A DNA stretch of 62,917 nt, the filler included, from Perkinsus chesapeaki ATCC PRA-425 (Eukaryota > Protista > Perkinsozoa): assembly GCA_013115145.1 (NCBI GenBank). It is 11 parts of 11 records of this genome, joined end to end, with 100 filler letters (N's around TTAATTAATTAA, not from the genome) between each part and the next. Parts side by side here need not be neighbours in the genome. Positions count along the whole stretch, not along the records: positions 28,516 to 33,265 come from JAAPAO010001228.1; positions 33,366 to 41,159 come from JAAPAO010001010.1; positions 41,260 to 46,803 come from JAAPAO010001150.1; 8 more parts are not named here. One strand, written 5' to 3'. The notes under the pieces were generated by a model. That model was not told the DNA's origin and did not search any database. It was given only the letters and a program-made list of their open reading frames with translations. Shown in pieces: positions 452-41,476 of this stretch. Within the stretch, counting starts at the first letter, position 1, and each line of letters opens with the position of its first letter. The position numbers and the translations under genes were made by a program.

Positions 452-2357
452 ATGCTATCCACTTGCTCCTCTTCCATCATAACCCGCCTCTTTGCATCAG
501 CTGCCCCTAAGGCCGCGGCTTCGACTCTGCCCTTTGCCAACTTGGCCAAGGCTGAGGCGGCCCTTGGAAAGCACGAGGATCGGTTGAAGCAAGCTCAACA
601 TGATTTATTATTGAAATATGCATCGATGGAAAATAACAGAAGGGAAAGGGAAGAGAAGGTTAAAGAGGCGGAGAAAAGGTAATAAAAGTATAGTAATTTG
701 ATATGAAATATTTTATGTATTAAATACCGCATAATAGGATATTATTGACTTATATAAACAATATATATTATCATATAATAATTATTTTTTAATCTATCGC
801 ATGGAAATACCAGTATTAATGAATAACCGCAAATGAACGGCCTTTATTGACATAACCCCGCATCTCCTTGTTGAAAATATTCACTTATTATAATTCGCTT
901 TTTTACTATCCTTATAATAATATCACTCACATAACGGTTGGAGAACATAGGGGCTAAATACTTCACAAGCTTATGGTTTGGTTTGCTATACTTCCGAACC
1001 CTCAAACATTTGACTTCATCTTGTTAGTAGACTGTATTATAATTTACTCTTGATGTTAAGGCTAAGCCATAACTGAGCTTCCTGTCTGTAAACATTCGAA
1101 ATACTGGGCTCTTGGAGTTGAACTACTCGGAAATATCCAACAATCTTAAAATGGCGCAACTCATCAGAGTGTTGTTATGGTAGGGAACTTGTATATTTTC
1201 GGAGAAGTATCTATTTGCAATATTACTTATTATATGATTATATTAAGGATCGTATTTCTATAATATATATTACACTTTATGTAGTCTAGTTGTTATTAAT
1301 TACTACTACCAGAATGTTATATAACCATGACACCGAAAGTGTATCATTGATTATGTCGTATTTAATATCACTTCACCACGATGAATTCGGCTATGCTGGT
1401 GATAGTATTATGGAATGATCAATACCTCCTTCATTCAAATGAGTTTTCGCTAGTTTACGATAAAATAATAGAACAGTAATCTTAGTCGAAATCAAGTCAA
1501 TTGTTACTTACAAATTTTAGGTTAGTTGAAAGTGTGAAAAATAGAATGCTCGAGCAAATGTCGAGCAAAAGATCATATGGTGATTTTATAACTCGTTTCG
1601 AATAGCTATTCTTAATATCTTTCCTTTACGTTGATGGGCATCATCTTCATATATACTACGGGGTTCTCGCTTTTGGCAGTTAATGTTTTCCTAAAGATCG
1701 GCGATACCCTGCGACATGATCGATATTAAACTGCTTGTTAGAAGCGTACTGAATGCAACTGTGTCGGGACTTTGGGAAGGACAAACCTATGAGTAATTTT
1801 ATAAAGCATCATTATGTGAGATTCGTATATTAAGAATCAATAGTTTCTATTATAAACTAAGCTTTGTTGCCAGCCGCAGCCATAACTCCTATAGCCGCAC
1901 CGGTCTGCCTGGTCAAAGGAGACTATAAAAGATATATTATAATTATTATATAGAACTGATACTCATCGTCGTTTGTGGTTACTTTTGATAATTCAGGCAC
2001 GTGAAGACCTTTGCAGCGAGCATTGTGGACGTGGCTGAAAAGATGAACGAGGCAGGTGATCTTGCTGATAAATTATCGAGCCAGGAAAACTCCTCGGACA
2101 AGGTTAAGAGTGTGGCCGAAGGGGTCTCGATCGCGAGGGATTTCCTTATAAGAAGTGTACTGTTGCAGAAGTACCAAATAGAGCCATTTACTGTGGAAAA
2201 CGGTGGAAAATACGACGTCACGCGCCAGGAAATTGGGGCTGGGAGCAAGGTGAAGCAGGTTAAGAAGGGCGAGAGTGCTACAGTTGATGGAGTTGAAAAA
2301 GAGGGTTGGAAAATGGGAGAAGATATTTTGAGGAAAGCTCAAGTTGATCTCAAGTGA
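452..2357 (+). CDS. grpE: Mitochondrial GrpE-type nucleotide exchange factor (Hsp70 co-chaperone), 2 exons, about 195 aa
   Basis: Exons 452-678 and 1997-2357 are joined by a phase-2 GT-AG intron, giving ...LLKYASMENNRREREEKVKEAEKR|HVKTFAASIVDV...AEGVSIARDFL...VDGVEKEGWKMGEDILRKAQVDLK*. This matches the GrpE pattern (ADxENxRKR; GV..L; GYxLxxRVLRxAxV). The Ser/Ala/Arg-rich N-terminus resembles a mitochondrial presequence. Confidence 0.85.
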
Positions 2358-2822
2358 GGTTGAAAGATACTCTCGACAAAGCGGCGTGTTTCGGTACTTT
2401 TGTTATCATTAATGTGCGGTTGAGTTTGTCACTTTGGGCTGGATAGGAACCTCGTATTGGAAAGGCAAGAAGCGTTGGGGGATTTCCGAAGCCTATTTTC
2501 CTCTGGATTCTCTCGATTAATGGAAGTGCTGGCTGAGCTAGCGGCTCAAGCTACAACGGATTAGCGGTCGCCGAGTTTATAGGATGATGGTAGTGGCATT
2601 TCGAAATGGAAAAATTGGGGAAATTTATCGAGGAATGTGTTGTTGAAATACAGCAAGTGATTTCATTACCGGAGTGCTTAGTTGAGATTTCCTCAATAAA
2701 ACAGGGGCGGCAATAGAAGGTTCATCATTTAGATCTGACTTATGTGTGATGCTAAATCTATTGAGCTACAATGAAGGTTTATTATAAGGTTGATATTATC
2801 AGCATTTGTCTATTTGTCAATA

Positions 2823-5800
2823 ATGTCAAAGTCATCACTATCGAGCTCGCCTCCGACGGGAGCCTTGCCGGGCATGGCATCACAGGGAGCGCATCAAAGC
2901 TCAGCTGCCTCGAAGAGGGCGTATAAGAAGGCACTGGAGCTGGCAAAGGGAGCAAATACAATACTCAAGAGGTGAAAAGGGGACAGCCGTCACAAATTAT
3001 GTAACTTATGGTTTGAGTTCGGTAGAGAATATGGTATTTATTCGTCGAAGTCCTTTTGATGGAGCTTTTTGCCAGCTCGTGAGCTGGGACTGTTGGCATC
3101 CTGAGCGAGGCGAAATCTCGCGGAGTAGGTTTTTAAGCACTGTCATGCAGACGTTAATATACCATAGCTCAAATCTATATAACTTTGTGGATGAGTAAAT
3201 CTATTGGGGGGAATCGGATTGAGCAAACGGTCTGTGGGTTTCGGCCTATTTATTTCGAAGATTCAGAAATGAAACACTTGGGAGAGTGCCTTGCAGGTCG
3301 AACTCATCAGCAGATTTCGAGCACTGCATTGGGGTCCTCAGCGAGGCGATCGCCTTGTGTCCGGATAAAGCAGCCTTCTACTCGATTAGAGGAAAGGCAT
3401 TCGCATTGAGCGAGATGTACCAAAGGTGATACAATCGATCATCTGGGCGAGCGAGATTTACATCGTGTCGATGTTAGGGCGTTATTTGACTATTCAATGG
3501 CAATACGATTGGAGCCGCATGTTGCAAAGCATTATGGCTATAGAGCTGTATGCTTTAAGAAGTGAGTTGAGGGAGGGAAAATTTGGGAAAAATAGAAGAG
3601 AATCAAGAAAGTGAGGCGAATTGAGGGAAAGGTATATATTTATAAATTATAAATATATACCTTTCCCTAAAAGACTCCCTTATAAATAATAATATATCAG
3701 AAGATTAATCGACTTAGCTGGGAAAATATGTCAGGAAAATAGAAAGATGCTTAATGTTAATTTAACATTTGAAATTCTTCCGGAAAACTTAGAGGTGCGC
3801 GTTCAACCGACTTGTTGATGTATTCAGGCTTGAAAGAGTGTCGGACTGTCTTAAAGATCTCACACAGGCAGTAAAATATGAAAAAGAAGGCTCACAGTAC
3901 ATTGTAGAGAAGGCGATGGTGAGAGGGCGTTAACTGTGATTCGTGAATTGCTAAAATGTACGCATTTATGTAATCGAAAGATGAAAGCTTGTCGTTTACG
4001 GATGTATTTTGGGGGTATATTAATATTTGTCATTTGGTCGACAAATTATGAGTCATGATGTATTATCAATATTGAGTAATATTGATGTCAGTATGATAGA
4101 TACAGTAGAGGTTGAGTATTGAATCGTTGTTAATGAGCAATGAGAGCATTTGGGCAATAGCGCATCTTTATGCGCAGCAATATCAGATATAAAGCTATTA
4201 TACATCACTCATAATGATGATGATGATCATCATCATTTAAAATATAACATACATGTTGTGATTTATACAGACTGGTCCAAAAAATTGTCCGGCGCCGATC
4301 TGATTGTGAGGTCGATCGAGTCTGAGGATGAAATTGGAAGCACTGGATCAGAAATTTGTGGCCCTATGTATGTAAATGTGTGTGTTTTATTGTGATGGTA
4401 AATATTGTAAATGGTGATAGTATAGAATAGCTTTAGGATTATGATGATCAAAGTGACAGTAGGTGAAGTACTTTAATAAATAATGATATAAATGTTATTT
4501 ACTGTCAATAAATGACGGCTTATTCGTTACGAGCAAAACAGTAAGCCGTAATACAGCATCTTGATATTACTTCTCCGGCTTCGCTACCAGAAATGACGCT
4601 CTGCCTTTACGAGCACTTACCCTTCTTCCTGATAAAACATTGTAATGTAACACAACAGTAAACACTAGCCGATAATAATAATGATCATATGATGTTGAAT
4701 AACCTTGTATAAATCAACTATAATCAATCACTATGGCGAGCGAGATGTATTGTGTAGAATGTCCCATGTTGCGTGCGTGCGCACAGCGACACAAACATTT
4801 CGGTACTGGCTCCCAAAAATAACTTTCGAATGCTTCCTAGTAACTACTGGTAGTAGCCTACTGCATATCCCTTTTCAGGTTAATTTTGATATTGAGGATT
4901 ACGTTTCAGCTTGTGATGACTTTACCGCAGCGATTGGGAAGGGATGCTCTAATCTGTATAATGTCTATTTGCATCGAGGAATATGTCACCGGCAGAAGAA
5001 GGTAAGAAAGAGAAGACCTTCTTGGTGTTCTATGACAGAAATAGCGTGCTTCATAATTAAGCTTTCACCAGGTATCATTTCCAGAGCAAGTGCTCCTAGA
5101 AGGGACTCATTTCGGATTCATTTTTTTAATTAGGAACCTATTCTTTCCAAACCTTTATTATATCTCTGCATTGGGAAATTTTATCATTTTCAAGGAACAT
5201 CGCGCCAGGGCGATCCCTTTTGCCCGCGGCCCCTTTTGCCAGGGACTCCCTGGCAGGAAGTCATGGAATATTATGCGACCAGTCAGAAAGAATGCATTTG
5301 GCTTCTACTTTTGCCCTATAAACGTATTGCACTTGTATCTCCTTTGCAATATATTTCCGCGAGGTTGGACGATCCCCCATTTCTCGGCCTTTTTGAGATT
5401 TTGGGTGGAGATATGGTATTATTTATATATGTCAATTTTATATTAATTATGATACTTCTCCAACTCAGTTGTTAAAAGAGAGTATTGAGGATTTGAAGAA
5501 GGCTGTTGAGTTGAATGCAGCAGATGGAGAGTGTCATGATCAGCTTGGATTATCATTGGTAAGATGACGAGAAAATAATTTAATAATCATAGTGAATTTC
5601 GCTATCACTATAATAGCGAATGCGATAGGTAGTCTACCTGAAGTAGACGGTTCGTACGATACGAACCTTTTTTGTACGAGTCGTACCATACAAAAAATCA
5701 CGGCGAGGTGTCGACGTGCAAACTGCACGCAATGCGGAAGTTGGTTACACTTCGTTGGTGTGGCTGAGTGATCAAGCTTCTTCTACATTCTAAAAGTCCA

Positions 5801-8800
5801 GATGAAAATGTCTCGATCGGAAGTGCAATTCTTTCTTCTCCCAGCGCCGTCACCACAGCCTTCTCGTGGTCTACATGCCATCCGGTTTGTGTATATGTGC
5901 ATGTGAAGGCCATGTTTTAATCAGTATTACCATTATTGAGAGTTCATCTCATGATCGGAGAAAACTCCGCCTGGCAGTGACAGTTTAAAAAACTTCGAAC
6001 ACCAAAACAGTGAACGAGTTCGGAGAAAATAACGGGAAAATCAGGTCGAGACATTCGGGGTTTGTCAGTTACTATTGCGAGAATATTATGGCGCGCGGGA
6101 AGCATTTACTAAAGCGATCGCTGGTTGCTCGACAGTTGAGGAAAATGGGAGGAAAGCTAGGTGAGGCGTTACCTTGTTTAACCTGGGAAAGATTAGCAGT
6201 CTCTGGTAAAATATGGATTGGATACTGGAAGTCGATATTAATTAATATGAAATATAATAATATCTATTTAGATCATTTAATACTTATTATTATTTTATCA
6301 TGGTGCAACTTATTTCCATGAATTATGTCGGATTAATAAATTTTAAGTATATTATTAACTGATAATATTGCTTTATATATTCCCGAAATAATATGGGCCT
6401 TACCTATCAGTAGCGCTCGGAGAGCTGCAAGTGTCTCGCTGAAATGCTCGAAATGGGAAATACTACTCAATGCTGTCAACTCAAGTAGCACGGCGTTTTG
6501 GGTTGGTGGACAGAGAGAGATAGTGCACTTCTCTGCTCTGTCGCATGCGAACTAGCTCCACTGGTGTTAGGACACATGACCTCCGTGCTACTCACCAAAA
6601 AAAATAATAATGAATCATGGCTCACGTAGGGAGCGCGAGTGACTTTCACGTTCCCTACGTTTTCAGGAATAACCACTGAGGGCTATTCCTGTACTTGTTG
6701 ATTAAATCTATGCGGCCCTTAACTTGCTCCATGACTGTTCCTATATGTAAATCTGCCTAAAGAAACGTCATACTGCGACCGAATTGTCGTATTCCAGATT
6801 CACAGTCATTTAGTGGTTGTGAAACATGCTCGCGAACATAACTAGCATTTCTGTGAAAATTTCCGGAAAATTCGTCAACAATGATGAGATCGCGGAAGGG
6901 CCGTTTGCTCTTGTTTAACCCGATGAGTTTTCCATGAAACAGCATTGATGGTGGTGATTATGCGAGTTTCTCCACGATTGAAAATCGAACAGCTGATCGA
7001 TTTGAGCTAGATCTCGTCTTGGTAAGATATCTGAATCATCGGGGATTGGCCCACTTCCAGTTGAGAGATTTCGAGAAGTCTTTGGAGGACCTCAACGAAA
7101 GTCTGGAGTTGAACCCGAATGACAGCAATGCGCATTTCAACAGGTGAGTCACTGCGCCACGAAATGTATCATCGCCGTATCTTTGACGATTAGAGGAAAT
7201 ACGTATTCCCGCCTTGGAGAACATGGACAGGCGTTGGAAGACTATAGGAGAGCGATGACAATCGATCCGAAAAATGCAGAGTAAGTTTCGTAAAATTTCC
7301 GATATTTACATATTTTCCCGCTGGATAATAAATACAGTCGGTTCAAATTTAGACAGTTCGTGACGTAAAACGTTTTGTAATTTCGTCAATAAAGCAGCTG
7401 AGAACCTAAAGCTTCGAGGATGGGAAATCAAAGATTGAGCTATGAAAATCTAACATACGTTTTACGTTTTAATGTATGGTATGAATTACATTAATAATCA
7501 TTGTATATAATGTATTTATTATTTCTAATAACTTATGGTATGAATTATATTAATAATCATTATGTATAATGTATTTATTATTTCTAATAACTTAATAAAA
7601 ATGAGTAAAGCAAGTTGAGGATTGTAGGTCAGCATGAGTTATCCAGTATCAATAATTCAAATATATTATTAACTGGGAATTCGGGGAATCAGCTTGAGGT
7701 CCCCAGACTTCCTGGTTACAGTGGACAGCCGTTGTCGGAAATTCGGCCTAGCAAAAGAGTCAGAAAAAATTTGATGAAATTTCCTTAAAAATGTATCTTT
7801 GGCAACCATGGGTTGAGTCATTCCACACCTACTCATTGGAGTGTTTGAAATCCTCGCTTCAAGCTCGGGAAGTATCTTTTAGGTACGACCATTACGAAGG
7901 TTTGGCTCATCAAAAGGCTGGCCGAATCGGCGAGGCAATCGAAAGTTTCACAAGAGCGTTTGAGAAAGACCCAAATTATTTTGCCGCCGAGCTCCACCTT
8001 GGACTGATGTAAGGGATTGGGAAAATATTGGACAGGAAATATTTCCGTACAAGTGAAAATTCTTCGTTCTTTTACCGTCGAAAATGGGGAGTCGTCTTTG
8101 GGTCGTTCGCTGAAATAAATGCCGCATAATGATTTATGATCTGAAATGTAGATGCTAATGAGCAAAAAGGGATCGACAAGATTCCACTGGTTGAGGAAAA
8201 TGCAAGGGGGCCATGGCTGAATTTTCTGCCATAATGGAAATTTCAAATCATAAAATAGAAGATGGACGAGTTGTCAATAATAGAACAGTCAGATCACCAC
8301 CTTACCATTCCGGGCTCTGGCTCCTTACGGTAACTTTGGTGAAGTCATGTAGTGTTTTATCATTGATCTGCAATGTGGGGTTTATCCCCGCTAAGTCCAT
8401 TGACTGAACTTTTTATAAAATTTTGTATTTGTTGTTTTTTCTCGATACTTTATTCGCTTTGTCCTTTTTCGAGACTCGTCCTGGAACAGAACTTTAGTTT
8501 GAACAGAGCTAAAACAGTTGAAATTGAAAACTAGAAAGTAGAGAATAGTTCTTTCCTTTGCTTTTTGTTAAGAATCTCCCGACATTCCGCTACTTTATTG
8601 TTCAGTGTCAACTGTTTGGCGTCGGACTGTAGCTTGAATTGTGAGTTCCTCAGTTCGTCAATATTATAACCGCCGCGGATGGATTTTACATCTAAGGCGA
8701 CTTGTCGCTGCGTGACGCTGCCCTGAATAAAGCTGCACACGGGAGTTAATAAACTGAGGCGCGCGCGGATAACGGCGGCTTTTGCCTGAAGTATCGTTGT

Positions 8801-11800
8801 TTGATTCTCCACCGTTTCAATCGCGAAAATGAAGAGCTACAAAGTAGATGTGAAAATGAACATTTTCATTTATTTTAAGTGTTTTTCAAATCACTAATAC
8901 GGCCCGTTCTAGTAATTTGAAAAATACTAAAGTAAATGAGAAAAATAGTAATGGATGCACATTTCTGAAGCTCAGATTTGGAGGTCCAATTGTCATTTGA
9001 TTAGTTACCGAGAATGTGGTAGACTTGAAGATTCCCTGGCTCGGTTGATGGATGATAAACTGGAAACGGTTGAAGATAGGCGAATGCTAGGTCAGGTGTA
9101 CGAAGCCAGGGGATTGATATGTGCGGATTTACTGAGGTAAGAGAATGCTTACATTTCGTGGCGCGCAAGAAATGGAAAAGACGCACTGAGAGTTCACTAA
9201 CACGAAGTTTGTCGGAAAATTTTATGTCGGTTTTCCGGTAGCGGCGCAGTGGCGTGATTCGATTAATAAAATGATTTGATCGAATGACCATCACTTTTAA
9301 TATCTTTCGACTTTATTTATATATTATAAATATTTTATATCAATGCCATGCTCTCACTTAAACTAAATTTTTCGGTCAACTTTCAGCTTTTTCCTGATCA
9401 GCGGAATGAGTTTCGCGAGTGCAGCGGCTGTGAAATCCCATAAGAGTTTTGGGAGTTGCGCAAGGACGATTGATAACACAAAATCTGTACAAGTGGAGAC
9501 AAGAATTGTCTAACGCTGAAGCACTCAAACTTAGCGTATACTAACACACCTGGAGTGTTTAAAAAAATTACCGATAGGTACGGCTCGTAACCGGGCTGAG
9601 CCTTAGGAAATTAGTCACAAATGGTGACATAGGTATCATATATATTTTAACCCTCCCACATCCTTCCTAGTCTCTAGTCTTGCACTGTTTTGACATGGAT
9701 ACCCAAACCGAAACCCGAAATACTCCTCAACCTTTGGGGTGTTCGGGCTTCAGGTTTGTGGTTTCCTCCCGCACTTCGTTGGGATTTTATAACAATTAGA
9801 ATGGATTTTTGAATTGATAGGAAGAACCTAATCCTTTAAAACTCAAATCAAGTGTTGGGTTGTTTTCTAGTCATTTGTAGAAACTAAAAATTGACCGCAT
9901 CGAGCAAGTTCGGGTGAAAAATTCCGGTAGGTATGATGAGGCGATAGCATATCTCAATAAAGCGGTTGAAACTACCGGAGAGCATTTACAAGTTATTCGG
10001 GCGCAGCTGGAGGAACGCCAAAGTTTGGAGGAGGAAAGAAATTGCGAAGGGAAGGACGAAAAAAGCGAAGAAAAATCAGAAGTTGCCGAAGAGGAAATGG
10101 TGGGGAAGTGACACTGGGACAGTGATGAGAATCTTTAGGAGTGTGACGCTGTGACGCCAGCGCACCGTGAAGATTTGGAGCTTAAAGAGGCATTGAAGTT
10201 GGCGTTTGCTGAGCATCTCCATCATAGAGGGGCGGTGAAGTCGAAAATGAGAAGATACGAGGAGGCACTGGAAGATTTCAACGAGTAGGGTCAGCGTTGG
10301 AAAATCTATCGATTGCGTCCCTGAGTTCAGCTCCAAGATCTCCTTAGCTCTAAGATTTGTTAGGTCCTCGGTAATTGTTTAGGTCCTTGAAGTCGCTGCC
10401 TTTGGATTCCGCGGCAGTTCTAAATCAGCGTGCCTTATGCTGGAAGTATGTTGGTAACCTTCCCGAAGCTATAAAGGATTTAACAGTCGCTGTGGATAAA
10501 TCAGGTGAATCGGTTGGAGTTTGTATGAAGCTCTACGAGTTATCGTTTACTCCCACGCGGAAAAGCGGCCGGAGTCGATGAAATGATTTTATTTCCGCCT
10601 TCGATCCTCATATCGATTGAGAAATAAAAAACGAGACCCATTCCGATTTGTTATATTGTGTTCAAGGTTCATAAAATATTATTTTTACAGGGACGCAAGC
10701 TGTCCAATACTGCCAACATGGCATCAGTGTAGGAGGCGATAAGTCAAATCGCTAGCGTTGTGGGAAATCTTCCGTGTCGGTTCCAGCTTGAACTTTGACA
10801 CTTGGTCGAGAATACGACTCTTCGACCGTGCATGTGGATTCGAACAATTGCAGTTGTCTTGGTCTCCTCAGGTGGAGTAGTGCTGGAGTATCTCTGCAAT
10901 CGTGCCCAATGCTTTCTCGAGTTCGGGATATATGGACGTGCTGATGATGATCTATCCAGAGCGATATCTTTGGCAAAATCGAGTGATCGAGGAAATCATT
11001 TATTCTATCGCCGAGGTGAGCAATAGTAAAATACGAGAATGTCCCACAGAGGTTCAGTCGTACTTGTTGATACTGTTGGGTAGCCTGTCAAAAGAACCGC
11101 CGAAAATCTATCCCTTTTCTCGTCCGTCATCAACATACCTTTATTCTAGTTCTGGTAGAAAAATGTCCGAGAAAATTCAAACGCACAGCGACGTGGTACG
11201 CGTTGGTCTCCAAGTGATGGAACCTAGAAAGTGTCCCTGGCGATGTGATAGATAGTTTGCAATGTCATGTGATGATCGCTATCTTCGTGTTTGTAGGCGT
11301 GGCTAGATTTGTCCAACAAAGATACAATGAAGCTATCCAAGATCTTCGTCTTGCACTTGTATCGGATCCTCCTGGAGAAGCCTGCATGCCCGATCTGTAT
11401 TATCATCTTGGTCTGTCTGAGGTAAGGGTTGGTTGTCTGATCGCTGAAGGTTACATCTACAGTTTGTTGATGGATGATATAATGAAGCTGGTAAATCTGA
11501 AATTCATCAGTTCTGTATAGGGCTAAGATCTTGGGTAAGTCTTGTCACGAAAACCAACCGGAAAGTGGTCCAAAAATGCGGTCATTTTCAAATTCCATTT
11601 ACTCCAAAATTCAGTTTTTACAAAAAAAGAATTTGAGTGTCCGAGTATGGCCAGGTTTTTAAACTTGTATTTGAAAAACTTGAATTTGGCCGCCAAATTC
11701 TTTTCGCCCGTTTTGTGATGGTATTCGTGACGAGGATGTGTCAGGCGAATCTGGGAGTGAACCCTCAACGAGCGGTCCAGGCATTCACGGAAGCAATCGA

Positions 11801-12769
11801 CCGACTGCCGAGTTCTAGACAAACGAAACCGCATTACCTGCATGAGAAGGCGAAAGCACTTCAAGCGTGCGGGGAACATGAAAAGGCTTTGAGGGCGTTC
11901 AGCGCGGTGAGATTTTGTATAGGGGAGCCGTGGCTCGGCTAAATCTGGGGTTAGGAAGTAGAGCGCTTTCTGGAAGTAATTTCCCAGTAGCGGAGCGGTG
12001 TGGTATGGGATTTTACGGCACGGGTGGGTAAGAGGACAGTAGATGCGTTCATCATTGACAGTGAACATGGACGGCAGAAGTACTATGCTTTGTGACTATG
12101 TGAACTGGAGTGCGACTTGTGAGGCATATTGCAGTATGCAGATTAAACGGCGGCTCTGTTGGGTGACGTATCTTTTTTGCTTGAAATTGCACGCTCAACC
12201 TGAGGGCGAGAGACTCCTCAATTGCAGGTTCTGGACTTGCAGCCTTTGAACGCACGGGCGATGTTCCGGCGAGCCTTCAGTTTCAAAGCGTTGAAAATGT
12301 TCGAGGAAGCTGCAGAGGATTATGAGGCAGCCAGAGAGCTCGAACCGGATGATGTGAGGTTCGTAATAGACTATAGGAAGATTGCCGAAGTTGAAGCTGT
12401 TACGTTGGGGCCGGCTGGGCATGAGGTAAGGGTGAGGTTGCGATGGTGAATCACACTGGCGATGAGAAGTCAGAAAATTTGGGAAATAAATATAAAACGT
12501 TGTATGATGATCGTCGTGGGCACCTCTTGGGATGGTCTTTATCGGTCGAGTTGGGCAGCAGACATTCGATTAACCTTATTATTGGTATCATCACGTATTA
12601 CGCGCCCGTTTTGAATTGGTCATTCCTGAGAATGTGAGCATCTTTATAGGATCCCATAGTCTACCGAGATCCTCAGCGCCCGGCTGTGAATGGAGGCGAA
12701 GTCGACGAGGGTGTTGAAAAGTTTGAGAAGTTAGTGGCTGGAATTGATCGCCAGTCTGTTGCTACGTGA
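2823..12769 (+). CDS. Large multi-exon tetratricopeptide-repeat (TPR) protein
   Basis: Phase-compatible GT-AG exons read by hand: 2823-2971, 3297-3425, 3478-3561, 3828-3918, 4879-5001, 5469-5558, [one unresolved exon], 7027-7143, 7194-7280, 7883-8008, 9005-9136, 9931-10099, 10139-10284, 10383-10504, 10872-11015, 11297-11421, 11745-11906, 12228-12425, 12650-12769. They encode repeated TPR helices, e.g. YLNHRGLAHFQLRDFEKSLEDLNESLELNP and ARAMFRRAFSFKALKMFEEAAEDYEAARELEP. Confidence 0.85.
5908..6436. repeat. Dispersed repeat of about 530 bp, copy 1 (in a TPR-gene intron)
   Basis: Near-identical to 17393-17935, from GGCC(A/T)TGTTTTAATCAGT to GAGAGCTGCAAGTGTCT. The same spurious ORF (MARGKHLLKRS...) appears in both copies. 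Confidence 0.9.
7475..7593. repeat. AT-rich tandem duplication, 2 x 59 bp (intronic)
   Basis: TATGGTATGAATTA(C/T)ATTAATAATCATT...TTTCTAATAACT occurs at 7475 and 7534. Confidence 0.85.
9688..9790. repeat. Dispersed repeat (MITE/TE-end-like), copy 1
   Basis: TTTGACATGGATACCCAAACCGAAACC...TTCCTCCCGCAC...GGGATTTTAT recurs in inverted orientation at 26627-26735 on another contig. Confidence 0.75.
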
Positions 12770-32416: not shown

Positions 32417-33873
32417 ATTCCCTTTACGTGGCATAAGCTGCATTTGAATGGTATTGGCAACACCTTTGGTGGTTTTGGCATAACGGGCAACGGTTTGCAT
32501 GGTTTTACTATAACTATTCCGGATGATAAAAAAGAGAAAATTAGGAGTCAAATCAAACACATTCTGGATCGTGGAAAAGTTGACTATCATGGAATCGAAA
32601 AGCTGATTGGACGACTTGGTTTTGCGGTACAAATATGTCCTGTCTATCGTTCAGGGTTGGCAGTGATGTATAGCGTAAAGTCTGTGATGTACAAGAAGAA
32701 CTTGTGGTCTATTAAATGTACCGAAAAGTTGGAATCCTGTCTCAAACGATGGTTGGATATTATGGATGAAAAGTTCGAGAGATCCATAGATGCTGTCGAG
32801 AATGGGAGGCACGATCCAGGAAAATGTCTCGTTCTGGCAGATGCCTCGACTCGCGCTATAGGATCTATCATTTTAGAGAAGGACAAAGGCGGTTGTTACT
32901 GTCGGCTAAAGATGGAAGATTTATTGGAGCTGGAAGATTTTCATGTGCACAATAGTGGCCCTTCTTGTGCGAATATGGTGACCTATGAGCTGGCAGCTGT
33001 ATCAATGGGTGTTATAGAAGCGAGACGTAGAGGGTACAGCGGTGATGAAATCTGGGTACTCTCGGACTCCCTTTCTGGAGTATCATTGATGAGAAAGGGG
33101 TTTTCGTCCAAGATTGGTCCGGCAAATGTGGTGGCTGCAATTACCCGACTCATAACTGAAGGAGTGCATATATCAGACCGGACCCTCTATATCCACCATA
33201 TTGATGGGGAGCAGAATGAGATGGCTGATAGAATCTCTCGGGAGCTAAGTTATCGGCCTATTGGTNNNNNNNNNNNNNNNNNNNNNNNNNNNNNNNNNNN
33301 NNNNNNNNNTTAATTAATTAANNNNNNNNNNNNNNNNNNNNNNNNNNNNNNNNNNNNNNNNNNNNTTATTATAACTAGTATGCTTGACACGTGAGAGGTT
33401 CGATGGGTAACCCAACACCCACGGCAAAACCGTTTTGTCCGGCCTAGGAAAAACGTCCTTTGTTTCCCGGGAAGGGAAATTCCCGGGAATTTCCCGGGAA
33501 AATCCCGGGAAATTTCCCAATTTTTCTCTGTCGGCGGATGTTCCATCCACCGACATGAATCGTGGAGGTTATCCCCCAACGACTTGACATAACACGAATA
33601 TCAGACGTAAGGCTAAGCTAGACGTTTTACACCTGCCTTTCATGACGGATCTAACACAGGTAAATAGCCTATTAAATAGGTTTTTAGATAACCTACCCAA
33701 TACCAAGACCGATTGTCTTGTTGGTTTAACCAAATTGGTTAAGAGAGGATCGATTCTACGACACATTCATAGTTCTACTAATCGATTCTGCGCCGCAGAA
33801 TCTGCGGCACATTTTGTGCCCAGTGTTCTCGGTCATTTTGCTAGTTAGATTAGTTCTTATCTCACATACCTGA

Positions 33874-33930
33874 GGTATGATGCTTCCGTACATAACAATA
33901 GACTATTGTTATGTATGGAAGCATCATACC
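33874..33930. repeat. Near-perfect 57-bp palindrome/hairpin (28-bp arms, 1-nt loop)
   Basis: GGTATGATGCTTCCGTACATAACAATAG-A-CTATTGTTATGTATGGAAGCATCATACC, with one G:T mismatch. Confidence 0.9.
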
Positions 33931-34285
33931 AGTTCAAAATAGTAAATAGTTAGTTACAGGTACTATTCGTTACAATCTTGAGCACTTCACATTCCTTTAA
34001 ACTTTCTTCACTTGATCAGATCCAGGTCTTGCTACTTCTTGCGTGCTCTTGACAATCCTTTACTCATCTCTACCTCGAACATAACGCTTATCGTAACGTA
34101 TTGTTTTAAACGAATCGTTTACGTAACGCTCGAGTTAGCAGTCCTGACACAATGTGTGTCTCACAAATGGCTCGCCAACTTCCACTATATATGGTATATA
34201 ATATGATTTTGTGGCTATTAGTTAGGCAAGTAGCCTTTCGTTCGAGTCTCTAACTGCGAGATTTTCCCTTGATGACATAGAGTTG

Positions 34286-36958
34286 ATGCCTCGCACTACG
34301 CGGTGTGCCAATGTATGCCATGATACCTCCGAGGAATTCCACCGGTATCTGATAGCGGCAGCCACACGCAACGGGTGGTCAGACAACTCTCTAACCTCTG
34401 CCGATCTAACCGATGCTATAAAACTCTTGCGGCCCGGCTATACACCATTATCTAGACGGAGGATTCGAGAGGTGGGTTTCATCGCACGGCAATCATCAAA
34501 TGGCAATCTTCGCTTTTCGCTCGTTATGCTTCTTCCCCTAGGTAAAGGAGGAGCTTTTTCGCACTGCCATGAACTCGGTTGAAGATCGGCTCTCGAGAGC
34601 CGCTGTTTCCAAGGAACCGGGAATCTCTGTATCAATCGACAGCTGGACTCCAGATGGTCATCGGGTTCCAATGCTTGCAGTGGCAGTGACCTACATGATC
34701 GGTGATATCGCCGAGCCGCTATTCAAGACTTGCCCTCTTATACTGCGAGCCTTGGGAAAAACCGAGCGAGAAACGTCGGATACAATCGAAGAAGTACTAA
34801 GATTGGAAATTGACAAAATACGGTCATGTAATAATATGGTCACACATCAGTGCGACCACTCTTTAGGGGGGGTCAACAAAATATGCAGCATACTGAGTGA
34901 CAATGCCAGTAATGTTACTGCAGGGCGCCAAAGGATCGTTGATACTGAGAACCGTGATGAGTTTTGTACCCTCTCTATCGGGTGCATTTCTCATATGAAC
35001 AGCATTTTATGCAAGGAGCTGACTGGACTGGTCAAGAGGGATAATATAGTTACAAGAACCGGACAATTTTACCCCATTATAGAGGTGTGCGAACTCACTC
35101 ACCGTTTAACTACGAGCTCATTCCCATGCCGCCAGTACAAAGGAACTCGTATCTTGCTAGTAGCCGAGACTAGATGGGCAAGCGCCCTGAGAAGCATGGA
35201 ATCGCTGTGGGATAATTTTAATCAAGTTAAGTTGCTGCTCCAGGAGCTTCGGGAAGTCCATTGGGGAAGGTAATACCGGGATTATGACTCCCATCAATGA
35301 TGAGCCATCATAGTTGTGATCATGTTACGTAACGACGTTAACATTGATTAACCTATAGTATAGGTCCTATACTCGTGAGATAGCGCATCGCACTGTAAAT
35401 TACTTTCTGCAGTAGGCGGCCTATTATAGCCTATAATTTATAGGCCCTACATTAATCCGCCTAATGAGACACATAATGTGTCACACATCCGCTACTAATG
35501 GATGGTTATTGGTACTGAGCTTAATGGGTATAGTAGTCCGCTAATTAGCTTTAGTTAGCCATTAATAACAGCCGACTGCATTTAAAAGATAGTCCTTTTG
35601 CTCAGTCTTTCCACCGTTGTGAAGGATTTGTGGAGCGAAGTGAACACCAAGTTCAGCGACGATTCTCTATTTGGTCGCTTAACTACTGCCCTGGAAGCCC
35701 TGCGACCCCTTAGTATACTTAACACACTACTCCAAGACGACACAACTACGCTCTACCGTGCGATCGAAGAGGTCTCCCGAGTATATACCGCACTAAGAAA
35801 CTCAAAAGAGCTTTCGTATCAATCCAGAGCGATGGTCGCTCATAGGTGAGTTGGAGTCGGGCAACGTGACATGGGTAGCCACTGGCAACTTGCCAGACAT
35901 TGCTCGAAACCGCTCATACAAGTTACGGCGACCATACCACCTATTGTATGCGCTTCATCTCATTCAGGCTCGAACGGTGCCTCCGTGGACGCCAGTGGGT
36001 TTTACAGATGGACCCAAGAAGTATTCCCGATAGCTTGGCTACAAGGAAGGAAATGGCGCAGTCGACAATGCAGATCTTGAAAGATTTTTGCTATAACAGC
36101 AAAGAACTGGATTTCGAGGAATGTATCAACGATGTGCTGCATTTCTTTTTAAGAACAGGTGAGGAGATGATGCATAGCAGCTCGGCCAATCGGCCAGCAT
36201 TAGGCCCTCACCAGTCTTACACGCAGAGGGAAATAAAGCAGATGCATCCTGGATCATACTGGTCCATTTTCGAGAGGTCATCTCCCGTTGCGAAGTATAT
36301 ATGTCAGTGCTGTCGTGCGCCTGCTGGAACCAGCTCGTTGGAGAGAATATTCTCCGTAGCCAAATGGGCTACGAAAACAAGGTAAAATAGCGAATTGTAG
36401 TGGTCGTAATAAATAAAATTTAAGTTACTGAATGACTTTGATACCACGATTGCTCCGTTTTTAGAACAAATATATCATCCACGAGTATTTATCGCGATAC
36501 TTGTATCAAGTGGTACCAGATCCAGAAAAACCCTCCGAGGCCGAAAAAGGTAGACACTGCTGGTCATTGGTCCGCTCCCTTGGTCTCATTTTCAGGCCGA
36601 TAAAGCAAAACATGGAGCGAAGGATACCGTAAGTGAAATCATGAGCGATTCAGATGACATCTATGATGGTAGTAGCACTACCATAGCACTTAGGGGGGCG
36701 TCGGCTTTTAGTACAACGGTTCTACTGAGTGGCTTTATCTGTGAAAGACTCGATGTGTCACGTCCTTCGAAGGAGGCTCCTTCAAGGAGCTTTCTGCACG
36801 GAAAGCTGGTTCAGGGCATCGATCAGAGCATCGCTCTCAGAGCTCGAATCGACGTTCCATCGAGCAGCGACGAAGAGTCTATCTCAGAAGCTACCTACCC
36901 CGCATCCAAACAAAGAGGTGGTCGAGGAAAGCATCTTAGGAGTCACAGAAAGCGTTAA
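34286..36958 (+). CDS. hAT transposase, catalytic paralog A (8 exons, about 643 aa, no BED finger seen)
   Basis: Exons 34286-34471, 34542-34827, 34867-35269, 35606-35845, 35968-36158, 36204-36381, 36465-36549 and 36596-36958 are all phase-compatible and stop-free. Motifs LLRPGY, D in SIDSW (34638), D in LSDNASN (34899), CISH, ETRWAS, MDPR, E in SSLERIFS (36341). Confidence 0.85.
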
Positions 36959-37455
36959 TATTCTTGTTAGGGACTTAATTGAGTGCATGACTATACTTAA
37001 AGCTTCGGGTTTCCGAAGCTCCAGTCTTTCTCGTCCTACTTAGCTCTATTACTCTTATTATCCTTAATTAGTTCAACTACTGTAGTTGTGTTAGTCGCAG
37101 AAACTGGCCCGGATTACTCGAGTGCGAGGTCCTAAACATCAGAGGGTAGTAAGAGTACCCAAAGGACCCATTGCAGCCTTTGTTGGTCCGGTTACCGGGT
37201 CCCGGTGAAGCCAGAATACCACTAGGCGTCGAGCTGTGGGTGAGAAGATCCCTCTCAGGGGGGCCGTGCGCGCTTCCGAAACCTTTACATGGGACTCTAT
37301 AATCGTTAAGATACAGTCGAACTGTAACAGCTCTCGTGGGCAAAGCTATCAGACACAATAAGGCATGGACTGAGCGCAACAAATCTCGAATTTCATGGAA
37401 GCCTTTACCGAGTAGCTCCTACGTCAAACATGCAACTTGCAACATGCATGGGATA

Positions 37456-40328
37456 TTAGATCTGAGCATCCACAGGGCTACTAGGCTCATCCTTGCGTTC
37501 CTCGGCCGTCAACGCCTTAGCTCGGAGGTAAGTTCCCACGCTCTTGAACGTTAAAACACCTTTCTTAGCCATCAGCTTCACTTTATCTATACTGAACTTT
37601 TCCTGGCTGGCTTGGCCGTTCTCAAAAATGATTTCATAGCCCACAGGCTTCGCAGACTTTCTCCGATAAACTGCCTTCAGCCTCGCCTTGTAATCGCAAC
37701 CGTCGCTCTCTTCTCGGTAGACGCATTTGGCACCGAGAGGTCCGAAGTATGTGAGATAATCGTGAGTCACATATTTCCAATCTTCTACACTAGCGGACAG
37801 AACCTCCTCTGAACTCACTCGGCTGTCATCGTCACAACTTGGATCTGAACATTGGCTCAAGCAGTTCTCGTCTTCGGATACGCTCTCGTGGTCTATGTTG
37901 AAGTTGTAGTCACTGTCGTGGGTAGACTTAGTGTAGGCGGCGAAGCAACTTTCTTCAAACCTGGCTACAGCAGCAGTTAAAGCTGCAGTGTGATCGTGAA
38001 ACTCCAGGTCACCGAAAGCTTGCTGAAGGCACCACGTCGTTGACGGAGAAACGCAGAAAGTAGTTAGGTATGCTGCCAATGGGCAGGACTTTTCATAAAG
38101 ACACCAGAAGTCGGAAGGTCGGCAACTCGCCAGAAACGACTTCGGAAAGGATCTGTAAGGGTCTGAACAAAGAAGGGAGAAATGAAGAGCTGTAAATTAC
38201 AGCTGTAGTGGCTATGATACTCACCCCTCATGTTGAAATAATTCATGGCTCCTTGTACTAGCGGTTCCGTGTCCGTACACCCCTGTTGGTAGATCAACCG
38301 CTTGCTATGGCTAATAGCTGAGATGGTACATCGGGTCGATGTCGACTTCCACGCGAAATCCTCAGTCATATCAGCAGGATGAAATTCGGAGATCCAGGGT
38401 TCATTCTGCATACAGCGGTTAAGCCTAAAGCATGTCAAAATCAAGCTGAATTCGAGCTGCATTATTCAACGGTGGAGCTACACTCACCTCGAGCCTATAA
38501 GCCTTGCGGGAAGCAGGTTAGCACACTTTTCGTTCTTTATGGCACAAACTGTTCGACGTGTAGCACAAATAACGTCGAAAGCGGTGCTCGAGCTTGTCAT
38601 CTCTTCCATCAATTTGCCAATGCAATTAAGTATCTTCATCATACTCTCAGTCTCTTCTTTACACTCCTTGTCCTTGAGAGTAGTTGCGAAGTCATTTATA
38701 TTCTCCATCTCTTGAGTGCCGAAGCTGAAATACACCCAATTGTGTAACAGTTTGCAAATGAAAGGAACCCACTTCTCTTCATCAGCTTGCAACGAGTGAA
38801 CAGCCTTATGAATAAACTTCCAGTTATCGCACACGTCGCGTAAGGCGTTAATGATACTTCCGGGACAATCAGACTTAGTCTCCGCTATCGGAGATCCTCC
38901 GGTAGCTCGGTACTCTTCATGAGCCGGTCCACCTTTCCCTGTAAATTCTGCGGCACGTCTACATAAGACAGTGAACTCCTCCAAGTCACATTCAGCTTTG
39001 AAGAACAGTTCCCAAAGCAGACGGCTTATCTCGAACATAGTGCAGTTCAGTAAAATAGGGTTCTTGCGGCCAGGACTGCCAAATTCGGACGACTTCAGTG
39101 CGTCAATGCCGTCTGTTCCACCACGCCCGACGATATAGCTTATCTCGACGGCATCTAACAGGGAACAAACAATGGCTAGAGAGTTGAATCAACTCAGTTG
39201 ATGGATAAACTATCTAAGTTAAATACTTGTTAGCTACACAATGGAACTGTCTATTACATTATCTATAAAAGATTATCTCTTACAGATTATACGCCCCGAC
39301 TTACATGTATCAGCGAGTCGCTGCAGTTCTGCGTTAATAACGGAGGCTACCCCACCAGACTCGAGATGGTCAATAGGCACGATATTTAGAGGGAGGCAGA
39401 TAAAGCTGAAGTTTTTCAAGTAGCACGCGCCAAGACGGATGCACTTAGAGTTATCGGGAGTTATCTTAGAGTTACCATACTGCACGACGTCGAAAACCAA
39501 ACCAACTCGCCTTCCTTGGCTGTAAGCTGATACTATTTCAGCAATAATATTGGTGGTAGCCTTGTCGATGATTTCCTTTTGGTACATCTGAATTGCCTGC
39601 TGATCCAAGCCGTGGCTATCGTAGCCGGGGCGCAAAACTCTCAAGGTAAGGGTCATGCTTGCAGAGCTCAGCTTTTGGATTGGAATATTCAGCGAAAGTG
39701 CGGTTAAGCACAACCTCTTGTGGAAGGTTCGTAGCAGTTCCTTTGTCGGAGCCTCAGGAAAATATCGTTTAATGCTAGACGTCGACCGTCGTGAATCTTC
39801 TGCCTTCCCAGCCAAAGATGTGCGGCGCGAAGCCGCAATGACGTGAGACGCATGAGCAACCGAAGATGATTCACGGTTGTCCTCGTGGTAGGGATCATCC
39901 GGAGTACTAGTCATCACGGGATCCTCAGATGCAGGGCGCTGCGTTTTAGGAGATGAAAGGCGAGGACGCTTTGTCGAGCCATCAGTAATAGATGAATTGG
40001 GTGTCATGGGCAGCATCTCACCATGTGCTCGAGGTGTAGAGGGTTCTTGTAGTACAGGTTGGACTTGGGGTATCGGCGTCGCACCGTCTGGATCATAGCG
40101 TCCGGATTTATACCGATAATGCACACGGGAAGGTTCCATATTAGCCAGCACCTGTCTGGTGTGATACTTCTTGAGATGTTCTCGGGCTTTCCAGCTGTTC
40201 CATGACACCCGGAAATTTGTACAAGGGAATATGCACTGATAAACCCAGAGGCCAATGTCGTTTTTGAACACCGGGCGATAGTACCCATCGGGCCGCAAGC
40301 CGTCTAATGGGTGTCGAGTAGGACCCAT
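37456..40328 (-). CDS. hAT-derived paralog B (4 exons, about 865 aa): BED finger, degenerate catalytic motifs, acidic linker and extra C-terminal domain
   Basis: Exons 40328-39305, 39154-38488, 38424-38225 and 38162-37456 splice to 2598 nt without stops. BED-like WVYQCIFPC...EHLKKYH and VLRPGY are present. FDVVQ replaces IDSWT, IVGRGG replaces ILSDNA, CTMF replaces CISH, TRW is absent, and LQQAF replaces LERIF. Confidence 0.8.
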
Positions 40329-40635
40329 CTAGCAAACGTGAAAACCCTGCATACAGATAATAAAGATAAATATAGATATACACTAAATCGTGATGATTTA
40401 ATCATCCCGATCCAATCCCCTCCGAAACGGCTGGCGCGGCGAGCGAAACTTTTGCGAAGCATCTCTAAAGTTTAGAATGAGATTGTCGGTGATTCTGATT
40501 CCAAAAATCGTACTAAGATTGTGATTCTTGAGTATAGAGTTGGATTTTTACTCTTACTCAACAACTGATTTGTTTATTGAGTAAATAATCTGAATCACAC
40601 CCAAAATCAGTATCCGCATACGGCCCCAGTAAAGC

Positions 40636-40716
40636 AATTCCGAAATTCAGAATTATTTCTAGAATGAGTTTTGTGAAGAAAGTGTTCATTCGATAATCAA
40701 TTCCAGAATTAGAGTG
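40636..40716. repeat. AATTC(C/T)GAAATTCAGAAT...TTCCAGAAT repeat family member
   Basis: Aligns with 59608-59690 and shares its motif with the arms of the 24341-24430 palindrome. Confidence 0.65.
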
Positions 40717-41476
40717 TAATACACTCTGAAACTAATTCTTAATATTAAAAATTATAACTTATGGCCAGACTTTGGCCATATGGCACTTTTTGGACGCGAA
40801 AAAGTACTCGTTACCTTTCTGTATTCCGGTGAGCTCAAAAGAGTACAAAAACAGGCGATTTTTGGAATTTTCCCGGGAAATCGCCGTTGAATTTTCCCGG
40901 GAACATGTTCCCGGGAAATTTCCCGGGAACGGGAAAAAGTTTCCTAGGGCGGACAACTTGTCAACCAAGATACACCTGGTGTATCAGAACTCCGTTGACC
41001 CGAGGCCTTCAGCGGTCGCTCAGACGCTTTGGATCATCTAAATCCTTTCCTCGTATTTAAAGGGTGTGGCGCGTTGCGATCCCTCACCGAGCCACCCTCG
41101 TGACAACTTCGGGAAATATCAGTGTCAGTGCGAACTGTAAACGTGTATATACTGTGAAGNNNNNNNNNNNNNNNNNNNNNNNNNNNNNNNNNNNNNNNNN
41201 NNNTTAATTAATTAANNNNNNNNNNNNNNNNNNNNNNNNNNNNNNNNNNNNNNNNNNNNCACCGGCTCTGTGAACCCGGGCAGACTCAAACACCCCAAAG
41301 CTCCGAGCAGAACCGAGCCGTCCAAGATTTTGGTGCATGCGTGCAAGGCCCTGCCATGTGCGGACGGGGGTGGGCAGTTTTGGGAACAATCACGAATAGT
41401 TCAACGCAAACGGCATTGTGCTTCTATTTATAACATTAATAACTTCCTTGTGGTGAATTTTTATATTGATTCCTGG

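Follow-up and report, generated by a model that had tools for sequence, protein, structure and literature searches.

The contig JAAPAO010001010.1 of Perkinsus chesapeaki, an alveolate parasite of bivalves (clams), carries a new two-gene variant of hAT, a superfamily of DNA transposons. The whole contig (7,794 nucleotides (nt); assembly GCA_013115145.1) occupies positions 33366-41159 of the window, a 62,917-nt stretch of P. chesapeaki records joined end to end, and all coordinates given here are positions in the window unless a related locus is named. In this contig, one pair of termini encloses a unit of ~7.5 kb with two convergent, GT-AG-spliced genes: gene A, which judging from its sequence is a divergent hAT-type transposase with an intact catalytic site, and gene B, a degenerate paralog that bears a zinc finger. 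The two-gene architecture is well supported. We consider it fairly probable that the unit is a low-copy or very recently immobilised hAT DNA transposon in which A is the catalytic protein and B its finger-bearing partner, the two forming a hetero-oligomer.

The hAT elements are among the largest and best-studied transposon superfamilies. They are the source of the Tol2, Ac/Ds, and Hermes tools, and many domesticated host genes derive from them. Their transposases are treated as single-protein homo-oligomers. If our reading is true, the placement of catalysis and end recognition on separate paralogs would constitute a natural experiment on which subunits of a hAT complex must be active, and it would provide a DNA-binding module that is naturally distinct from its nuclease partner and so might be redirected on its own.

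Termini and subterminal repeats

The ends of the unit consist of short inverted termini and, inside each of these, an array of a short palindrome:

33435-33451, plus strand: left terminal inverted repeat, TTGTCCGGCCTAGGAAA, 16/17 complementary to 40940-40956
40940-40956, minus strand: right terminal inverted repeat, 17 nt, 16/17 complementary to the left one
33464-33511, no strand assigned: left subterminal array, four TTCCCGGGAA copies, the last being ATCCCGGGAA, with a start-to-start spacing of 16, 11, and 11 bp
40870-40929, no strand assigned: right subterminal array, four perfect TTCCCGGGAA copies at 40870, 40894, 40908, and 40920

The initial annotation of this DNA, made from the bare sequence, had placed a 17-bp inverted repeat at the ends of the unit and four CCCGGG palindromes inside each end. 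Both features are found. The 16/17 match between the termini was reached in none of 300 shuffles of both end regions, and the four CCCGGG sites per end turn out to be the core of a 10-bp palindrome, TTCCCGGGAA. The contig holds seven perfect copies of this palindrome and one with a single mismatch, for a chance expectation of 0.00, and no copy occurs in the contig outside the two arrays. The left boundary is further defined by a distinct Logan contig of 2,365 nt from the same DNA run, which matches 33435-33498 at 55 of 64 positions. The match opens precisely at 33435, and the sequence preceding it is unrelated to the window. The genome therefore contains a second terminus of the same type, and 33435 is a true boundary.

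In the Logan run, the element lies within a single unitig of 7,599 nt (33409-41007; depth 231), both flanks included. The unitig of the left flank (depth 339) forks after 33438, and at 40978 another path joins that of the right flank (depth 497), which identifies both flanks (33366-33438 and 40978-41159) as low-copy repeats. The alternative paths have depths of 113 and 328, and neither of them represents the plain empty site. For comparison, depths of 84-107 are found in other long contigs of the run. Contig depth was dropped as a measure of copy number because of the repeated flanks and because Perkinsus is described as polyploid in a passage of PMC8062965 that cites Bogema et al. 2020.

Gene A and its degenerate paralog

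The unit contains the following features between its subterminal arrays:

34286-36958, plus strand: gene A, spliced model, stop-free, all introns GT-AG
34286-34471, 34542-35269, 35606-35845, 35968-36381, 36465-36549, and 36596-36958, plus strand: gene A exons
34638-34640, plus strand: first catalytic Asp of gene A (D1, in SIDSW)
34899-34901, plus strand: second catalytic Asp of gene A (D2, in SDNAS)
36341-36343, plus strand: catalytic Glu of gene A (in SLERIF)
36959-37455, no strand assigned: intergenic spacer, 497 bp between the stop codons, devoid of both the terminal repeat and TTCCCGGGAA
37456-40328, minus strand: gene B, 865 residues, called by NCBI as an 854-residue gene
40328-39305, 39154-38488, 38424-38225, and 38162-37456, minus strand: gene B exons
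40161-40235, minus strand: N-terminal C2H2 finger of gene B (CIFPC..x15..HLKKYH, Cx3C..Hx4H), the sole such pattern in a coding frame
37489-37788, minus strand: B-specific C-terminal domain, ~100 residues following an acidic linker, predicted to form a Tudor-like beta-barrel and then a helix

The two tail-to-tail, stop-free genes of the initial annotation could be reassembled with GT-AG introns, and NCBI likewise calls two genes on the contig, one of 485 residues (plus strand) and one of 854 residues (minus strand), neither of which has a Pfam family. The gene A product has 569 residues without the last intron and 671 residues with it, the last intron being used in the NCBI model as well; a 45-nt in-frame intron at 36159-36203, within exon 35968-36381, is optional. 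The NCBI protein (KAF4651760.1, 'hypothetical protein FOL47_000207 [Perkinsus chesapeaki]', 485 residues) has the same start, last intron, and stop as our longer model, but it splices away 34703-34925, which holds the second Asp block, and leaves out exon 3 (35606-35845). Because relatives read through both of these blocks in single open reading frames (ORFs), the longer model is the better one, and comparison with these sequences suggests that the deposited model is probably over-spliced. The annotation gains from this, as both genes are named 'hypothetical protein' in Perkinsus records and the deposited A model misses part of the active site.

The identity of gene A as a hAT transposase follows from the residues it has kept and from Hermes being its best match by both profile and fold. 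The D-D-E residues, the CxxH motif (CISH), and the TRW motif ascribed to A at the outset are each present, and an alignment with relatives (10 sequences) shows no variation at the second Asp, C148, or H151 and hardly any at W212. An exhaustive HMMER search with exon 2 of A returned ten proteins among 1.84 billion representatives, namely KAF4651760.1 itself, proteins of Perkinsus olseni, ORFs from Logan SRR12548988, and a few generic hAT-like proteins. When a profile of A and its relatives was compared with the sequences in the Protein Data Bank (PDB), Hermes was the sole match below E=0.01 (E=0.0045, residues 91-268). As modelled by AlphaFold, exon 2 shows the strand-helix order of an RNase H fold, at a predicted local distance difference test score (pLDDT) of 59.6, and with this model ranks 1-12 in Foldseek are all Hermes (E 4e-5 to 9e-4, TM-score 0.30-0.35), followed by retroviral integrases. 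The Hermes structures among these matches are assemblies bound to transposon ends. Further leads are a Pfam DUF659 match in P0007, a distant relative, and DUF659/ZBED1 RNase-like clusters in Atlas; the DUF659 match was the sole significant family when every exon piece of A and B and the relatives were scanned with Pfam. The C-terminus of A carries a YW...P.A...ER.FS pattern that is conserved among A-like proteins; the hAT dimerisation family of Pfam (PF05699) does not match A even at E<=10. Word-indexed protein searches with exon 2 of A, an alignment of the B core, and an alignment of the B C-terminus returned nothing or only the query itself. A metagenome scan with the A profile yielded six short contigs, on which generic hAT relatives but no B-like genes were present, and a scan with the B-like protein of a related locus (L005, see below) gave zero matches. 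The claim that A has no BED finger also stood up, since a scan of all three plus frames from the left terminus to the gene A start codon found no zinc-finger pattern.

Paralogy of A and B, another proposal of the initial annotation, is evident from the spliced models, which match in BLASTP at E=2e-14 with 19% identity and are collinear over A18-540 and B202-707. BLASTP of unspliced A ORF pieces against B gave nothing, and the homology is thus visible in the spliced models only. The two genes also share two introns in position and phase: a phase 2 intron (A 35845/35968, B 38488/38424) and a phase 1 intron, which in A is the optional 45-nt intron (A 36158/36204, B 38225/38162).

Gene B has a degraded active site. 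The SW that should follow D1 is gone (GLVFDVV), TD replaces the SDNA motif at D2 (GTDG), CTMF is found where A has CISH, TRW is absent, and the position of the catalytic Glu is taken by a Gln (38023-38025; LQQAF, compared with LERIF in A). The losses first listed for B are therefore real, but the degeneration is incomplete, as both Asp residues are still present. B has also retained the helix/LRPGY block and, at its C-terminus, the hAT block through which subunits make contact in Hermes. The Cys, His, and Trp residues of the N-terminal finger are conserved in the B-like proteins of two related loci (L005 and L003), and Atlas gives weak C2H2 leads for it. The C-terminal domain is modelled by AlphaFold2 with a pLDDT of 86-93 and may be Tudor-like, a lead that comes from its structural matches to the Tudor domain of BAHCC1 (Z 6.5), Spindlin (5.5-5.9), and RDM15 (5.2). 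Foldseek also places Tudor domains at the top, at an E of about 0.1, which is below the level of safe fold identity.

Some other sequence features were observed in and around gene A. Between gene A and the left end is a near-perfect hairpin of 57 nt (33874-33930), with arms of 28 nt that are 96% complementary and a loop of 1 nt. Rfam microRNA-like matches at 33869-33935 were rejected because they reflect the hairpin shape alone and fall below the gathering score; no small-RNA family was found in the contig at gathering level, and no tRNA gene. Two 19-nt stretches, 34145-34163 upstream of gene A and 35465-35483 inside its intron 2, are each palindromic (TGACACA..TGTGTCTCA) and are 89% complementary to each other. 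Intron 2 also abounds in TATAGG-type palindromes.

Related loci with A-like and B-like genes

Contigs bearing relatives of gene A were fetched and inspected for their gene content. In addition to the window, an A-like and a B-like gene are adjacent in three very divergent loci:

Window, P. chesapeaki: convergent; B intact, D1=D, Glu position=Q; A intact
L005, SRR12548988, 6.9 kb: convergent; B-like with a BED-like CxxC..HxxxH finger, D1=D, Glu position=F/A; A-like intact, 5' end cut by contig edge
L008, SRR12548988: tandem, B then A; B-like with 5' end cut by contig edge, D1=C, Glu position=C; A-like complete, finger-less
L003/L016, two P. olseni isolates, 99.7% identical: tandem, B then A; B-like of 868 residues with a VWNY..C..C..HIRQEH finger, D1=H, Glu position=D; A-like finger-less, truncated

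In L005, the A-like gene is on the plus strand (3-1935) and the B-like gene on the minus strand (5913-2690), the latter with an intact ORF of 470 residues, and the two products have 27-40% amino acid identity to those of the window. In L008, the B-like gene ends at 2220; its A-like neighbour starts at 2365, 145 nt past the B stop, and extends to about 4525. Across all loci, the catalytic Glu is absent from every B-like gene (4/4 loci), the A-like genes keep D, D, and E wherever the sequence is present, and every readable A-like N-terminus is without a finger. When the C-terminal domain of B was searched for with an iterative profile, it turned up in exactly the four B-like proteins. To date, members of this lineage are known from Perkinsus and one further sample only. 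Since the pairing recurs in two gene orders at ~30% protein identity, chance adjacency is ruled out. Furthermore, the intact B frames across this divergence suggest that B is kept by purifying selection for a non-catalytic role, despite the free variation of its active-site residues.

The palindrome is shared as well. Past the 5' end of its B-like gene, L005 has two perfect copies of TTCCCGGGAA, 23 nt apart (6291-6323; chance expectation 0.01), and it has no nucleotide similarity to the window other than this motif. That TTCCCGGGAA persists close to the ends of two elements which cannot be aligned otherwise suggests that a protein binds there and that its site is conserved; as far as can be judged from sequence, the obvious candidate for its reader is B's finger.

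A different arrangement is found in L007 (Logan SRR12548988 contig 728852), where one gene (1176-3441) combines a C2H2 finger (YTCCLCDG..HLYESH), the helix block, and D1 with intact SDNA, GCLSH, IRW, and SLERVFS motifs. No B-like gene adjoins it on the 4.3-kb contig. From its motif content, L007 probably represents the undivided ancestral architecture. The loss of the finger in paired A-like genes and its presence in the unpaired L007 fit a division of labour after duplication. In a tree of the shared N-terminal block, three of the four B-like genes form a clade (support 92/92); a scheme in which the A-like and the B-like genes each make up a clean clade was abandoned, the tree of this block being too weak for it.

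The surroundings of these loci hold further genes and repeats. Upstream of the hAT-like gene of L007, two plus-strand ORFs (L007:35-1127) have the look of a transposase of the MULE/MuDR type (CYVH, NSIESINKSLK), and given these ORFs the neighbourhood is transposon-rich. Further downstream in L016 are an opposite-strand gene and a reverse-transcriptase gene (10943-12592, RVT_1). A 68-nt stretch of L004, another locus with an A-like gene and from the same run as L005, is 76% identical to one of L005 (L004:2620-2684, L005:6410-6474). It lies beyond the TTCCCGGGAA repeats in L005 and ~1.2 kb after the A-like gene in L004, which could be a B-less derivative, or else the stretch could be a common flanking repeat.

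Proposed mechanism, alternatives, and known systems

In the mechanism that we propose, gene A would supply catalysis through an RNase H-like DDE core with its CxxH and W blocks and without a finger, and gene B would bind the TTCCCGGGAA arrays via its finger and join A through the hAT oligomerisation surfaces that it has kept. In its active form the complex would be a hetero-oligomer, with A alone cutting and joining DNA. Gene B, from which the third residue of the catalytic triad and the CxxH and W blocks have been lost, would have gained its Tudor-like domain, which may tether the complex to chromatin. Hickman and colleagues reportedly found in 2014 that the Hermes octamer uses only some of its active sites, with the BED domains of the other subunits holding subterminal repeats; an A-B heteromer would make this asymmetry permanent. 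We infer the A-B complex, the binding of DNA by B, and mobility. A more far-reaching version, to which we would give slightly less than an even chance, is that duplication split a transposase into an obligate hetero-oligomer, with A catalytic and a dead B reading TTCCCGGGAA and chromatin, which would make this the first two-subunit hAT. The initial annotation had proposed such a split, and the recurrent pairing, the B-like genes without Glu, the finger-less A-like genes, and the undivided L007 agree with it, but the missing target-site duplication (TSD), a finger unrecognised as BED, and the retention of D1 and D2 in B speak against details of that proposal.

Several observations weigh against an A-B transposon. 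The terminus begins with TTGTCC, which differs from the usual hAT consensus, YARNG. No direct repeat of 5-8 bp flanks the termini at offsets of 0-3 nt (the left flank ends with AAACCGTT and the right flank starts with CTTGTCAA), and the TSD of hAT elements (8 bp, or 5-7 bp in certain subgroups), which the initial annotation had named as a possible support, is thus missing from the ends of the unit, although the original duplication may have been lost because the flanks are themselves repeats. As the whole element and its flanks fall in one unitig, no second insertion site is visible in the genome. The splice models of A and B are predicted from GT-AG sites, reading frames, and homology, and no Pfam model matches any piece of either gene. 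The finger of B, called a BED finger in the initial annotation, is BED-like in its C2H2 pattern and its position, but neither Pfam zf-BED (PF02892) nor a profile search of PDB sequences recognises it. The linkage of A and B recurs in L005, L008, and L003/L016, whereas L002, L004, and L017 have an A-like gene without a visible B, their contigs being short or the copies decayed. At least one of the linked loci is no active pair, as the P. olseni A-like gene (L016, JABANP010000321.1, 4199-5825) is truncated, the C-terminal hAT block with the Glu being absent. Finally, in the tree of the N-terminal block the A-like genes do not resolve, and the fourth B-like gene falls outside the clade of the other three.

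It is also conceivable, but in our view unlikely, that B, though part of the same element, is a regulator and not a required subunit, for example a dominant-negative inhibitor (acting by competition for the ends or by the poisoning of A oligomers) or a host-chromatin factor acting through its Tudor-like domain. Judging from its motifs, B retains the DNA-binding and oligomerisation parts and not catalysis. Transposase-derived inhibitors, such as KP of the P element, share this make-up. Hermes in an N-terminally truncated form without its BED domain has been solved bound to the terminal repeat (4d1q), and the finger-less A might likewise act alone. However, a pure inhibitor would hardly stay linked to A in two gene orders and at roughly 30% protein identity, and the absence of a finger from all paired A-like genes fits dependence on a partner.

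We give slightly less credence to the idea that the unit is immobile, a domesticated host gene pair of the PiggyMac/PgmL kind with its old termini surviving. The single locus in the P. chesapeaki DNA run, the missing TSD, the integrity of both genes, and the great mutual divergence of the related loci, with no recent copies, would all be compatible with this, but the termini and the eight perfect or near-perfect repeats are intact, the motif is kept in L005, and a second terminus of the same type exists elsewhere in the genome. Moreover, the related loci sit among other repeats and transposons, their gene order varies, and some copies are decayed, as in transposons and unlike conserved host genes. 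Very improbable indeed is that A and B come from two distinct hAT elements, adjacent or nested by chance, with the termini belonging to one of them: the region is repeat-rich, with both flanks repeated, but the adjacency is found in four independent divergent loci, there is one terminus pair with no internal copy of a terminus or of the repeat motif, and B alone could not be autonomous.

With the known hAT elements (hobo, Ac, Tam3, Hermes) the unit has in common the RNase H-like DDE core of A together with its CxxH and W blocks, the short inverted termini with short subterminal repeats, and Hermes as the best match by profile and fold. It differs from them in having two paralogous genes instead of one and a catalytic protein without a zinc finger, and in being without an 8-bp TSD, a YARNG terminus, or a Pfam hAT match. 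With two-component DNA transposons, such as Harbinger, MuDR, CACTA, and ProtoRAG, it shares the presence of two element-encoded proteins inside one terminus pair. In Harbinger, both the transposase and a Myb-like DNA-binding protein are needed for mobility (PMC2836001). The PIF/Harbinger arrangement resembles the present one in that two proteins, one catalytic and one presumed to bind DNA, are encoded within one terminus pair, but it belongs to another superfamily and its partner is unrelated to the transposase, whereas here the partner is a degenerate transposase paralog.

Two other comparisons concern the host genus and the number of genes per element. The Dada elements of Perkinsus marinus have a DDE transposase with distant similarity to hAT, but they lack terminal inverted repeats and insert in tRNA or snRNA genes (PMC3706591); the Dada superfamily was ruled out because the unit has termini and no tRNA target. 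In rust fungi, hAT7 elements include a gene for a TET/JBP dioxygenase (PMC12730594) and thus also have a second gene inside hAT termini, which in their case is an unrelated captured enzyme, whereas here it is a finger-bearing transposase paralog. One gene per hAT is therefore not a strict rule, and the initial statement that hAT elements encode a single protein holds with hAT7 as an exception, although TET/JBP is no transposase paralog. The further statement, that no described hAT is known to have the present architecture, agrees with our literature search, which did not cover Repbase and found no two-gene hAT or hAT with an inactive paralog.

The closest parallel in evolutionary logic is provided by ciliates, in which PiggyMac, an active nuclease, is paired with inactive PgmL paralogs that retain the fold. 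Both cases combine an active nuclease of a transposase family with inactive paralogs. However, PiggyMac and PgmL belong to the piggyBac family, and their genes have been domesticated by the host, are dispersed, and have no termini, whereas the present genes are of the hAT type and lie together in one unit. If our reading is true, this unit would illustrate how inactive transposase paralogs such as PgmL originate before domestication.

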